From assembly GCA_964035545.1 (NCBI GenBank), contig OZ037766.1, positions 31,734,773-31,798,772 on the forward strand: a DNA stretch of 64,000 bases, in the 5' to 3' direction. Below the pieces are notes generated by a model that saw only the letters and a program-made list of their open reading frames with translations, was not told where the DNA came from and ran no database searches. This DNA comes from Bugula neritina (taxonomy: Eukaryota > Animalia > Bryozoa). Positions 17,497 to 63,901 of the stretch are shown in pieces; the stretch's first letter is position 1; each line of letters starts with the position of its first letter. A program made the position numbers and the translations under genes.

Positions 17497-18524
17497 ATGA
17501 ATACTACCTCAACTACTGCAAACTCTTCCACAGGTACATCTTTTCACCTAACTAAAGCTTTCAAATAGTTATTTTAATCTAATTTGTGATAAATGTAAAT
17601 ACAATAAAAAACAAACCAAATTTACCACTCAATTGAAGACTTTGTTAAAAAGGAAATTTATTTTTGCGTAAGCATACATTGTAAATAATGTATTTTGTTC
17701 CAGAGTCAAGCAACAACAGTGAAGGTACTTTTAGCCACACCATATCTAAGGTATTGACCAGCACGCAGACAGAGATTGTTTTGGCTCCAACAATTAGGCC
17801 AGACAACAGTTCCCCGTTTGACACTCTACAAATTATTGTAGGAGCTTCTAGTGCTTTTCTCATAATAGTAAGGAAACTAAATGTAAACAAAACATTTGTA
17901 CTATTCAAAGTAACATTCAAAGTAACGTAACGCTTTGCTTCTAAGGCAATAATAGGGTTTCAAAATAATGGAAAAATTACCTTTAATTTAAATAAATAAT
18001 AACACACACACACACACACTCAGTGGTTAATGTAATTACAGGTTTGTGGAATAGCCTTTGGGTGTTACACTAAAAGAAATAAAAAGAACCGCCTGATTTA
18101 TGATGAGTCAGCTATAGCAAACTCAGAATCGGTAAGAAGTGTTGAACAGCAGCACTCAGAAAGCAACAAAGAGAATGACATAGCCAGTCAACTGTCAAAT
18201 GACATGTATGCCAAAGTAGTGAAGGAAAGGCCAAAACCCTTGTCTCACGTTGCTGAAGTTCCCAACACCAGTAATGATGACAATTTAATGAATACAAATG
18301 TGATAAATACACCAGAAACATTACCTTTTCCGCCTACTGTCGCTAGCCCACCTATTCCACCTGTTCTATCAAAACAATATCACCCTGAGCCAAATAACAA
18401 TGAAGCTATTAGTAAACTAACAAATGACCATAAAAAGTTAAGTAAAAATAAAAAAGATCACAGGAGACCTAAACCAAAGAAGCCAAAAAAGAAAAAAAAG
18501 GATAAAAAGAAAAAGCGAAAATGA
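17497..18524 (+). CDS. Small single-pass membrane protein (about 227 aa), transmembrane-adaptor-like ('adaptor 1')
   Basis: Exons 17497-17533, 17704-17867 and 18042-18524 join in frame. Short S/T/N-rich ectodomain (MNTTSTTANSST...), TM LQIIVGASSAFLII|VCGIAFGCY, then basic TKRNKK. The tail has LIYDES, DMYAKV, PFPPTVASPPIPPV and a Lys-rich C-terminus. The start is uncertain because an upstream exon is possible. Confidence 0.7.
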
Positions 18525-19227
18525 AATTATAAGTTGTACTTTTGCATTTTTATAGGCTACAATGCCGATGTTTTTAAGAGAAATGTGCTTCAAACTTTAT
18601 AGAAAGTTGCTATGATGGGTATACCGTGTCTAAAAATATCTGGCAAACAATAAAGACACCCAATGTTATTACTTGAATTATTTAATGATTTAAAGTAAAT
18701 ACTATGATCATGAGTCCATGGTATTATGTTGAGTTATGAGAGAAAAATGTAATTTGCACCAACTTATATGCATTGAAAATAATTTTAGTATAAAAAATAA
18801 ATTGTATGTGTTATAAAAAATGTTTAAGTAATTTGATTCAGGTGGGATATAAATATAATTGGTGAAAAAGTAAGTAAAAACTGCCACTGTTGCTGTCAAG
18901 TTGTATTTGCACCAACTAAATTAAACTTTTGGATCTTTTTTTACTTTTTAATGCACAAATAGATTTGCTTTGCAAGCTACTAAATTTTAGCAAAATGACA
19001 ACAACTTGTGTAACATATTATAAACTTTATCTATATAGTAAATCATATTACAAACTGCGTAAATGTTGTACTTTCATCTTTTTAGTTTACCAATCGATAT
19101 ACTAAAAAAATTCAGAATACTTTGCATTTCAATTGTTAATTTTATGTTGAATTTGTGTAATTGTTGATCCTTGAGCAAAATTACAGGATATCCTCTCTAT
19201 AATTGGACACAGCAGAGTTTAATTAGT

Positions 19228-60246: not shown

Positions 60247-63200
60247 TCATTTTCTACTAGTCGGTCTATCATTAATATTTTCTTTATTCCTGCTGCTTGA
60301 TTTTGATTTGATACTAGGAGTTTTCCTCTTTTTTCTAGTCTTGGTAGATGCTTTAGAAAGTTTTGTGTACAGAGTGCCATTATAGTCATAGTCAGTATAA
60401 TCATCCTTTTTAATGTGACTACTCTGTAATGCTACTATCATTCTTTTAGTTTTTCTCCTTTGATATTGAATCCACCCAGCAGCTACCTGAAATATCCACT
60501 ATGAGTTTTAAATCTTTCATTTTGAAATTTTTGAAGGCGAATTTTAAAATGTGTTATTTAATGCTTAGCAATTGTATTTTTAGTATATTTTTTCAAAATG
60601 AATGTCAATAAACTAAAATCTTGGGTACATTTAAAATACCCTGAGCATACAAGACTTTAAAAACATTTGGTATGATAAAGGAAATGTGATTTATCTAAAT
60701 ATTTTTCATGTGCATGTATGGCTATATCTTTCTTTAATATACAAACTAATAAGCAACAGTTGATACTTTTCTTGTTACTATACAAGAGTAATTATTACCT
60801 TAATTAATAGTTACTAACTTCGAATTATTAGGAAAAATGTTAATAGTTGTTCAATAAAATTAGTTGATTCAGTCATCAACACTTTAATAATTTATAGACC
60901 AGCCACTACGACATTACTATAGCAACCAGTCACTATGGTTACTGGTTACTAAGGTAACCAATCACCATGATTATTAGTTACTCAGGTAACCAATCACTAT
61001 GGTTACTGGCTACTCAAGTGACCAGTTACTATGATTACTGGTTACTATGGTAACTAGCTACTATGGTGACCATACTATACCAACTGCAGTCACTATGGTA
61101 ACCAGTTTATATATAGCTATTAGTGTCTATTCTCTATAATGCTGTGTTTTAAATTGCTACTCACCAGGCTAGCCATGAACATTATGATTATGGCTATTTC
61201 CAGCACTACAATGGGCAGGTTTCTATAATTCACATAACTCTTTGCAGCGCTACCTGAAGTTTAGCAAAACAACTTTTTGTGCTTTTTCACTAGAAAACAC
61301 TAAACCAAGTAATACAAATAGTAAACTAAATAACAGTACCACTTTGTTATACTCAAGACGCATGCACACATCAACAATTTTTGATAAGAGTAGAGGTTAG
61401 TGTGTTGCATGGATATATGCTTGGTTTTCAGCTACAGTTAAATTTAAGCACAAAAAACAATAGGCTAAAACGTGGTTTGTTTCAGCAGCAAATCTGACTC
61501 TTTGTGCCTTTATATACTTTTTATACAGTTAACTTCATGTTAAAAACACACATCTTAACAATTTTGTTCAAAAAGTTTAAACATAATTATTTCTGTACTA
61601 TGTAAGGAATTACAGTGAAACATTTCAAGACATCACGACAATAAATATGCTGATAGTTTTTTTTTAATCCATATTTCTCAGATTTATATGAAAATAATAT
61701 GTTGGTATGAAGTTTAAGGTAAGATGCTCTCACAGTATGACTCACCAACAGTTGCAGTTAAATTGAACGGACCCTGGTCGTTCTCTCCATCTACATCTAA
61801 AAAATACAACTCAACCTCAAGCTCTTGTGCTGCTGATAGCTTTCTATACCCATCTTCTTTTCTTCTAGTAGCCAAATCAAAGGTATACTCAGCGTCATTC
61901 CTACAAGTAATTATATAATATAAGTAAGGGTGGCACTTGAATCACGCGCAATCTTAGTATTACTGGAACTTTTCATTATTTAATGATTTCCCTGCAAGCA
62001 TCAAATACTATTAACTATAAATAATTGATTAGCAATTTAGTTTATGAATTATAAGGCAATCAGCAATAAATTTTAAGGACTTGATATTTTTCTAATGCAA
62101 GAAAAAATAATTATGTTGTTTAACCTACTTTAGGCTTGTAACTAGTTCAAACAATGTGTTAGCTGACATATCGACTATTGCATGAAATACCCAGTTTGTT
62201 TGATTGAATGTTTTATACCTGGTGTAGAGAAGAGGAAATGTGAGATTGAAGCCAATGTTGTCTTCTGCAAGTCGTACAAAACTTGGAGCAAGATATTGGT
62301 AGGCAAACTTCAGTACCATGGTTTTTCTATTGGGAAATTTTACTAAAATCTTTTCACCAACATCAAATATTCCTTCTAAAAATAGCAAAATATTGTGGAG
62401 AAAATTTGTGTTTTTTTTTCAATCTATAATTTCTACAACTTTACAGAAACAAGTTAGAAATGTTCTCTAACTGCTTTATGATTGATACTAATCAACTACT
62501 AAACCAGGTATATAGTTTAGAGTATTTCCTATTAACATTTGTCTACAATTACTGTTTAGGAGTCGTGTGTCCTATTTTCAGTATCAGTTGTAGACCAGCT
62601 TCCAGCAATCATTGATTATGCAAAATTAGAAAACCAGGCAAAACTTTTTGCTCACAAATGAGAAGCAATTTCGTTGTCATTAAGGCATAGTTTGATCAAT
62701 TTAGAACAAAAATGTTTAAAAAAGATGGCAAAAATTTAATTCATTCCCTAATTTCAAATCTTATTTTTATCACTTGAAAAAGAGTAGTTAGTTTTGAGAA
62801 GTACTTCTTGATAGCAATGAGTATGATTTATCTCAAATTCAGACGTTCTAAGAAGACTTGCAATCTGACTGTCACTTTATTTAGATGTATGTGGACAAAA
62901 GTTTTGAAATCTGATGATGAGAAGGCAATCCCTAATTTTTTTGTAAATAAAAAACACTTAAACCGCTTGCTCAAACAACTTAATGCACTCATTGTGTATG
63001 ATGTGTGAGCGTTTCTTTGCTACAAGATTTCTATAATACGAAAGAACTGTTTCTAAGTTGTGATGAGTTAATACTTGATCTTATGGTTATCTCCTCATTA
63101 GAAACAGAGTATCCTTTCGCATAAGAATAAACCTTGACTTTTACTGTCTTTGTCACTCCATTACCAAACAGGGAATCTCTGACAATATTGAATGAGTATC

Positions 63201-63901
63201 TATGTAATCTTCCTTTAAATTCTTTTTTATTAATCACTCTGAAGTGCTCTGCAACAAATATATATAGATATAAATATATATATATAAATATATATATATA
63301 TATATATATATATATATATATATATATATATATAGTAAAATGAGTGTTTATAAAACGTTACTAGAGTGCTCATTCTTTATAAGCCACAGTTATCTTCCCT
63401 CAATAAGCGCTATGACTTTTTATCCATATGCAGACATAGTAGTAAATTTCTACTCAAGAATGCTGTAACATAGCCAATTAATTCCAATGCTACCTCTTTG
63501 TTATATTTTGATCTTCTAGCTTTAATCTGTGTATATTTACATATTACATTATTTATAGTTGTAAGCAATCATAGTGGCTAATTTATCTGACGAGTGCACA
63601 TCGTTCTTGTGTACGAAACTACTAGTAATAAATGCCATTATATTAATCAAATCTCATTTTACTTCTTCTAATATATATATATATATATATATATATATAT
63701 ATATATATATATATATATATATATATATATATATATAAACATAAAGTAAACTGAGAAACCTACCTACAGCAATAACTCTCACACTACATGTTGTGCATAT
63801 CATTTCCACTTTTTTGAGGAAGCTGCTCCCTTGACCCATTTGGAAACTAACAGTTTCAAACCCGTCAAAAGCTAAGTTGGTTGGTCGTTGCAAAAGAACT
63901 A
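60247..63901 (-). CDS. FN3-like type-I receptor, tandem copy 2 (5' exons lie beyond the window end)
   Basis: High similarity to copy 1 in exons and introns from about 59947 to 64000. Same TM (NLPIVVLEIAIIIMFMASL|VAAGWI) and a near-identical tail. Confidence 0.72.

Follow-up and report, generated by a model that had tools for sequence, protein, structure and literature searches.

What kind of receptors are encoded by a cluster of neighbouring genes in the bryozoan Bugula neritina that differ in their ectodomains and agree in the architecture of their transmembrane (TM) helices? The cluster comprises six adjacent genes, A to F, at 17497-63898 of a 64,000-nucleotide stretch of contig OZ037766.1 (hereafter the window), and an initial annotation had proposed that it is a candidate immunoreceptor-like or recognition locus assembled by shuffling ectodomains onto one TM-tail module. 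All six genes give open reading models in which every intron is GT-AG, and the spliced models were compared with databases exon by exon. As judged from sequence, A to F appear to be real, conserved, clustered and lineage-restricted non-catalytic single-pass receptors. Their interest lies in the kinase-less, EGFR-like family to which B and D belong and in the paired pattern that these two genes display, rather than in the locus as a unique immunoreceptor complex. The genes are listed below by position in the window, with a slash marking the intron within the TM helix and the bordering donor and acceptor positions after it.

17497..18524, + strand: gene A, 227 amino acids (aa), exons 17497-17533, 17704-17867 and 18042-18524; TM junction FLII/VCG, donor after 17867, acceptor 18042
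19228..32433, + strand: gene B, 1212 aa, 17 exons; TM junction VVIL/IGN, 30742/31603
34044..36023, + strand: gene C, 303 aa, signal peptide 34044-34125; TM junction FIIA/IGV, 35044/35475
36860..51805, - strand: gene D, the paralogue of B in inverted orientation, 1252 aa in 17 exons; TM junction VVAV/LGS, 38741/37858
54192..59268, - strand: gene E, ~470 aa, 11 exons (the 18-nucleotide exon 3 is tentative); TM junction MASL/VAV, 55109/54431
60247..63898, - strand: gene F, in tandem with its paralogue E (91% aa identity), 5' part beyond the window; TM junction MASL/VAA, 61165/60486

The architecture described by the initial annotation holds in every model. The last intron is phase 0 and lies inside the TM helix in 6/6 genes, at a junction that falls within the most hydrophobic 21-residue stretch nearby (mean Kyte-Doolittle 2.2-2.9 in all six), while the end of the TM and the entire tail occupy a single in-frame terminal exon of 79-332 codons. 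None of the six models contains a catalytic domain, and the sole match in a kinase scan of the window is a separate receptor tyrosine kinase (RTK) at 566-1373, outside genes A-F. The description of the genes as lineage-specific, clustered non-catalytic receptors likewise stands.

Genes B and D combine an ErbB-type ectodomain with a tail that carries no kinase. Gene B encodes, in order, a signal peptide, L1, the cysteine-rich (CR) domain II with an insert, L2, CR domain IV, a short stalk, the TM, an acidic Tyr-rich tail and a Lys-rich end; the tail of gene D carries repeated YDEI units and a Lys-rich end. The following parts of B are central to its interpretation.

21652..21757, + strand: B exon 6, encoding modules of domain II; its loop at the dimerisation-arm position has 11 residues, as placed by Cys spacing
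22259..24408, + strand: B exons 7-10, four phase-1 exons encoding a ~280-aa insert in domain II
31603..32433, + strand: B terminal exon, with the TM end, an Asp/Glu/Tyr array, one strict immunoreceptor tyrosine-based activation motif (ITAM; ~32269-32325) and a polybasic C-terminus

The L1-CR-L2-CR order is recovered by Pfam profiles PF01030 in exon 2 (E-value 0.008) and exon 12 (2e-4), PF00757 in exon 5 and PF14843 in exon 14 (5e-5). The best matches of domain II are ErbB4 and ErbB3, with the start of the domain matching ErbB4 at an E-value of 2e-12, and the exon leading from CR into L2 matches the insulin receptor better. A tyrosine kinase domain was not found in B or D, whose tail is one stop-ended exon with no Pfam match, nor in any of the clusters read. 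The dimerisation-arm loop of EGFR and other ErbB proteins measures ~26 residues; between the flanking Cys residues, the corresponding loop has 11 residues in B/D and 15 in the paralogues on chromosome 6, and both groups lack the arm.

The insert in domain II comprises two related all-beta repeats (exon 8 against exon 10 profiles, E-value 4e-5), which are probably divergent F-type-lectin or galactose-binding-like repeats. By eye, the insert motif and its exon split resemble PF22633 and F-type lectins, and the end of exon 9 preserves only a degenerate Arg...Asp-Cys...Cys loop in comparison with the fucose-binding His/Arg/Asp/Arg motif. F-type lectin-like sequences (PF22633, F5/8 type C) are abundant in this genome, with at least 150 exon matches and large tandem clusters on C3, C5, C6 and C8, and most PF22633 exon matches cover no more than the profile's first half, much as the insert is split. 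When searched against 1.84 billion proteins, the insert profile recovered one Bugula fragment along with short, partial multi-stretch matches, and essentially nothing outside Bugula samples.

B and D belong to a family of ~15 genes in three clusters. At least five paralogues with the same exon order and insert are found at C6:9.40-9.60 Mb, and these chromosome-6 paralogues repeat the CR-L2-CR unit and an FN3-like exon up to five times per gene. Eight further domain-II copies lie at C2:30.57-30.68 Mb, 4/8 of them followed by weak insert matches at the right distance. No kinase match was found in 200 kb of the chromosome-6 cluster; at least three other domain-II loci (C1, C4 and C5) have kinase exons nearby. 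The chromosome-6 cluster carries two tail types on related ectodomains. At C6:9542015-9562079, a gene is followed by a long terminal repeat (LTR) element and then by a second CR-FN3-TM-tail cassette with the other tail type, which may represent either a truncated gene or an alternative 3' end. The cluster is also broken up by larger LTR retroelements, whose reading frames resemble gag and reverse transcriptase. Many kinase genes on small contigs (C15, C33, C66, C101, C170 and others) are open only if TAA/TAG are read through, which suggests ciliate-code contaminants in the assembly. No description of an EGFR-derived, kinase-less, insert-bearing family was found in the literature searched, and no relatives were detected outside Bugula samples.

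Conservation was assessed against contigs from samples in JGI records labelled AY690838 and from SRR4020080/83, which are taken to represent a second Bugula lineage because their synonymous divergence (dS) from the window is 0.25-0.52. This lineage also contains the terminal exons of A, C and D, with reading frames kept, basic ends kept in A and D, and splice acceptors kept in A and C. Amino-acid identity to the second-lineage orthologue is 82% for the A terminal exon (ratio of nonsynonymous to synonymous divergence, dN/dS, 0.24), 82% for C (dN/dS 0.17) and 84% for the D tail (dN/dS 0.32, dS 0.25), and one ectodomain exon, an insert exon from chromosome 6, gives a dN/dS of 0.15 between lineages. 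Gene order is kept as well, with A before the 5' end of B and C facing D; an orthologue of the B tail was sought and not found. The initial annotation had proposed dN/dS as a check, and no comparison yields a value above ~1 on meaningful counts or any sign of diversifying selection. Over the C/D tails, divergence between two second-lineage samples is 1.9%.

Within the window, the ectodomains of B and D are 93% identical at the aa level (dS 0.12), compared with 59% for their tails (dS 0.64). Across exons 3-8 and 10-15 their dS is 0.02-0.19, below the between-lineage range of 0.25-0.52, and it reaches 0.29-0.64 in exons 1, 2 and 9, the TM exon and the tail. The tails are thus older than the lineage split and most of the ectodomain is younger, as seen from the tail dS of 0.64 against 0.25 between D and its orthologue, and gene conversion homogenising the ectodomain is therefore indicated. 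The pattern implies that such conversion does not reach the tail, the first exon of L1 or one exon of the insert. Positive selection is not supported in the spared exons because dS rises there along with dN, keeping dN/dS under 1. Vertebrate paired receptors (Siglec-5/14, Siglec-11/16, KIR, PILR) are neighbouring paralogues with conversion-homogenised ectodomains and different tails. B and D are alike in their near-identical ectodomains over divergent tails, but differ in lacking an Ig fold, a basic residue in the TM with which adaptors could pair and a clear activating/inhibitory dichotomy. Taken together, B and D show a paired-receptor pattern, and nothing else in the data speaks as strongly for a role in recognition.

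The shared TM intron requires more caution, since the six genes represent four lineages and not six independent cases: A, C, the inverted pair B/D and the tandem pair E/F. Outside the window, the same phase-0 mid-TM split is present in 5/5 chromosome-6 TM cassettes read, each of which is kinase-less and has one terminal exon with a basic end. Because all five carry this intron, the TM module is a family-wide trait and is not confined to this locus. The first Lys or Arg follows the junction by 9-13 codons in 11/11 genes (A-F and the five cassettes), a tight register. Under a crude model that is not calibrated on this genome, a phase-0 intron within the TM would occur by chance in 5-20% of genes, and its presence in three further independent lineages would have a chance of ~1e-2 to 1e-4. 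The shared mid-TM intron probably reflects descent of the TM-tail exon pair from one ancestor, certainly so within the EGFR-like family and possibly in A, C and E/F. As the tails of different lineages have no detectable homology, the position of the intron is the sole evidence for an origin shared across lineages, and the proposed shuffling of ectodomains onto one ancestral module is not borne out. The LPI(V/M) motif noted at the opening of the TM in both EGFR-like and FN3-like genes is indeed present, but was rejected as a sign of homology, since its distance to the junction is 13-14 residues in B/D but 18 in E/F and an ungapped comparison of B with E scores weakly.

The tails agree more closely in their basic ends than in their Tyr content. 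Lys and Arg account for 12-21 of the last 30 residues in five of the six tails of A-F, confirming the Lys-rich ends first noticed, with C at 3; a polybasic C-terminus is the common trait of 10/11 tails when the five from chromosome 6 are included. The Tyr motifs that had been ascribed to all the tails are numerous in B (23 Tyr after the TM), D (22) and C (10), but few in E/F (4) and A (3), and the chromosome-6 tails (n=5) have 0-4. The single strict ITAM of B (shuffle P=0.04) is lost at the same site in D. Gene D has two ITAM matches and one match to the inhibitory counterpart (ITIM), all within a 10-residue repeat expansion; in its orthologue the array is shorter and contains no ITAM. No match to Yxx[LI]x6-9Yxx[LI] or [ILVS]xYxx[LIV] was found in the other nine tails (A, C, E, F and five from chromosome 6), and no ITAM in the C orthologue. 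E and F carry TLYTKL, which resembles a broad-consensus ITIM or immunoreceptor tyrosine-based switch motif (ITSM), together with a Glu in the TM. ITAM/ITIM signalling as a common output of the locus is accordingly not supported. The Tyr arrays themselves are kept in the D and C orthologues, in D as an acidic YDEI array, a pattern typical of Src-family substrates and SH2-adaptor docking rather than of ITAMs.

The four remaining genes have simpler or less certain ectodomains. Gene A consists of a short Ser/Thr/Asn-rich stalk, the TM, a juxtamembrane Cys and a Pro-rich then Lys-rich tail; its 5' end is uncertain, lacking a signal peptide, with an in-frame acceptor at 17465. Gene C has a Ser/Thr stalk with 39-bp repeats, the TM and a distal Tyr cluster, without a Lys-rich end. 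Paralogues of A and of C were searched for and not found. Gene E has a signal peptide, approximately three FN3-like modules and a 79-codon terminal exon with TLYTKL and a basic end. Of the ectodomain types originally assigned, the EGFR-like identity of B/D is upheld by the Pfam and ErbB matches, but the FN3 identity of E/F is weakly supported (Pfam fn3 at an E-value of 0.039 in one exon and Lar FN3 at 1.9, with no match for the other exons). A +1/+2 frameshift over ~9 codons separates E from F and is compensated, so the frame is kept (56066-56315 versus 62129-62375). A third, more divergent FN3-like paralogue of E/F lies at C2:31802548-31803175, ~4 kb past the end of the window; its matched exon contains one TAG.

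Several further features were recorded in and around the cluster. At the site of the D donor GT, exon 2 of B has TT (19738-19745) and needs a weaker in-phase donor 6 nucleotides upstream. One mobile element was found inside gene D.

47495..50147, + strand: LTR retroelement in D intron 3, with identical 122-bp LTRs at 47495-47616 and 50026-50147 and a gag-protease open reading frame at 47943-49316

This element, in which no reverse transcriptase was seen, leaves the D exons intact and appears to have inserted recently. Long open reading frames at 15527, 26944, 27814-30223, 39154-40886 and 52205 were rejected as microsatellite artefacts. A DHHC palmitoyltransferase and an RTK kinase are among the genes flanking the cluster. 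The latter probably belongs to a PVR/VEGFR-like RTK array directly upstream, with three similar tandem kinase exons at C2:31674695, C2:31712420 and window positions 566-1373 (family assigned by eye). Juxtamembrane Cys residues in A, B and C (18042-18070, 31603-31630 and 35475-35510) are possible palmitoylation sites; the upstream neighbour of the cluster is the DHHC palmitoyltransferase gene, a pairing that may be coincidence.

Several described systems share features with these genes. B and D share with ErbB/EGFR the L1-CR-L2-CR order, the single TM and a Tyr-rich tail, but they lack both a kinase and a pseudokinase, have a short arm loop and contain the ~280-aa insert, and their chromosome-6 paralogues repeat the L2 unit; they belong neither to the ErbB RTKs, kinase and arm being absent, nor to Alr. 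In Caenorhabditis elegans, the IRLD family (hpa-1, hpa-2) and DAF-2B are lineage-expanded receptor-L-domain proteins without a kinase (PMC9262388). The B/D family differs from these in its full four-domain ErbB scaffold, lectin-like inserts, TM and long conserved tails, and the two groups likely arose independently. The Alr genes of Hydractinia encode TM helices in single exons and tails too divergent to align, with some ITAMs and alternative TM/tail exons (PMC9546547). The Bugula cluster resembles Alr as a set of clustered, non-catalytic single-pass genes of a colonial animal with unalignable tails, but it differs by the split TM in every gene and by the rarity of ITAMs, and no Ig domain matched in any exon scanned. 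The likeness to Alr put forward in the initial annotation therefore fails at both the Ig domains and the TM exons. A and C also resemble LAT, NTAL and PAG in their small ectodomain, juxtamembrane Cys and disordered tail, and the acidic YDEI/YENI arrays of B/D recall nephrin-type multi-Tyr tails. There is no sequence homology to any of these proteins, and A has 3 Tyr only, one of them not conserved.

We prefer the reading, at a probability of roughly 0.5, that A-F are clustered type I membrane receptors for recognition or adhesion, without catalytic activity of their own; the cell would sense their clustering through disordered, lipid-anchored tails and, in some of them, through Tyr arrays phosphorylated in trans. 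An ErbB/EGFR-type ectodomain would have lost its kinase and dimerisation arm, gained two lectin-like beta modules within domain II and expanded as a family in Bugula. The ectodomains would bind external glycans or proteins and then cluster, while each disordered tail would be held at the inner leaflet through its polybasic end. Src-family kinases could phosphorylate the acidic Tyr arrays of B, D and C (YDEI, YENI type) in trans and so create docking sites for SH2 adaptors, and the Tyr-poor relatives may be non-signalling or differently coupled partners. Gene conversion would keep B and D on much the same ligand with different outputs.

Several results weigh against this interpretation. Exon-by-exon searches of Pfam, PDB and Atlas gave no match for the fold of the insert, and models of its half-domains reach pLDDT (predicted local distance difference test) values of only 60 and 49 (exon 8 = 49), with a best Z, in fold searches of exon 10, of 5.6 to unrelated barrels. 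Local alignment, hhalign and ungapped windows detect no tail homology among the A, B/D, C, E/F and chromosome-6 types beyond composition; tail similarity is limited to B/D and to the first 18 residues of two chromosome-6 types, and a short helix match between B and one chromosome-6 tail has an E-value of 0.16. Moreover, we infer the signalling steps from motif resemblance and the established features of SH2 ligands. A bolder form of the proposal, which we regard as rather unlikely, would have one ancestral TM-tail exon pair, with its mid-helix phase-0 intron and polybasic end, fitted with EGFR-lectin, FN3 and bare-stalk ectodomains; a growth-factor scaffold would thereby have been repurposed as a glycan-reading paired receptor and, as a molecular candidate for recognition of self/non-self, kin or symbionts, would be the first in bryozoans. 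The literature search returned no molecular recognition locus for bryozoans, and the allorecognition literature found concerns cnidarians and ascidians.

Other explanations account for parts of the same evidence. The retained L1-CR-L2-CR ectodomain, the kinase-bearing EGFR/InR-type genes elsewhere in the genome and the tandem RTK kinase exons directly upstream of the cluster would suit decoys or co-receptors of growth-factor signalling, which bind EGF- or insulin-like ligands or lend Tyr docking sites to kinase-bearing EGFR/InR, in the manner of IRLD/HPA, DAF-2B or ErbB3, with A, C, E and F as unrelated neighbours or adaptors. IRLD proteins without a kinase do modify insulin and EGF signalling (PMC9262388). 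This alternative is nevertheless unlikely: the dimerisation arm is missing, neither the insert nor the tandem CR-L2-CR-FN3-like amplification, up to five per gene, is needed for a decoy, and the long conserved tails and the two chromosome-6 tail types are left unexplained.

An ITAM/ITIM-based immunoreceptor or allorecognition complex of the Alr or leukocyte-receptor type, exon-shuffled onto one TM-tail module, is less probable still, even though the genes are clustered duplicates in a colonial animal and kin recognition is reported from one B. neritina population (Keough 1984, cited in PMC10078279). The ITAM of B, albeit lost at the same site in D, and the TLYTKL and TM Glu of E/F would fit such a complex, as would the paired-receptor mosaic of B/D, which diverges in patches at exon 2 (L1) and exon 9 (insert). 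However, those patches have raised dS as well and no comparison shows positive selection; the B motif is weakened by its shuffle probability of 0.04, the D matches lie in the repeat expansion, and neither the C/D orthologues nor the other nine tails have any. The second-lineage samples, moreover, are only 1.9% apart over the C/D tails, and kin-biased settlement was not found in another population (PMC10078279). Similarly improbable is that A-F are structural surface proteins without a functional unit, serving adhesion to cuticle, substrate, cilia or gametes, with basic tails that bind lipids or the cytoskeleton and an intron that is common or coincidental. Here the near-invariance of the polybasic end (10/11) rather than of Tyr, the mucin-like stalks, the lack of tail homology between lineages and the absence of detected paralogues of A and C are set against the Tyr arrays kept in the D and C orthologues, the tight intron register across all lineages and the gene order kept in the second lineage.

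The preferred reading, of recognition or adhesion receptors, thus draws most on B and D and their relatives. This family shows that the ErbB ectodomain tolerates loss of the dimerisation arm, insertion of two domains and tandem amplification of L domains, and it supplies concrete candidates for recognition in B. neritina, a species in which kin recognition has been reported.

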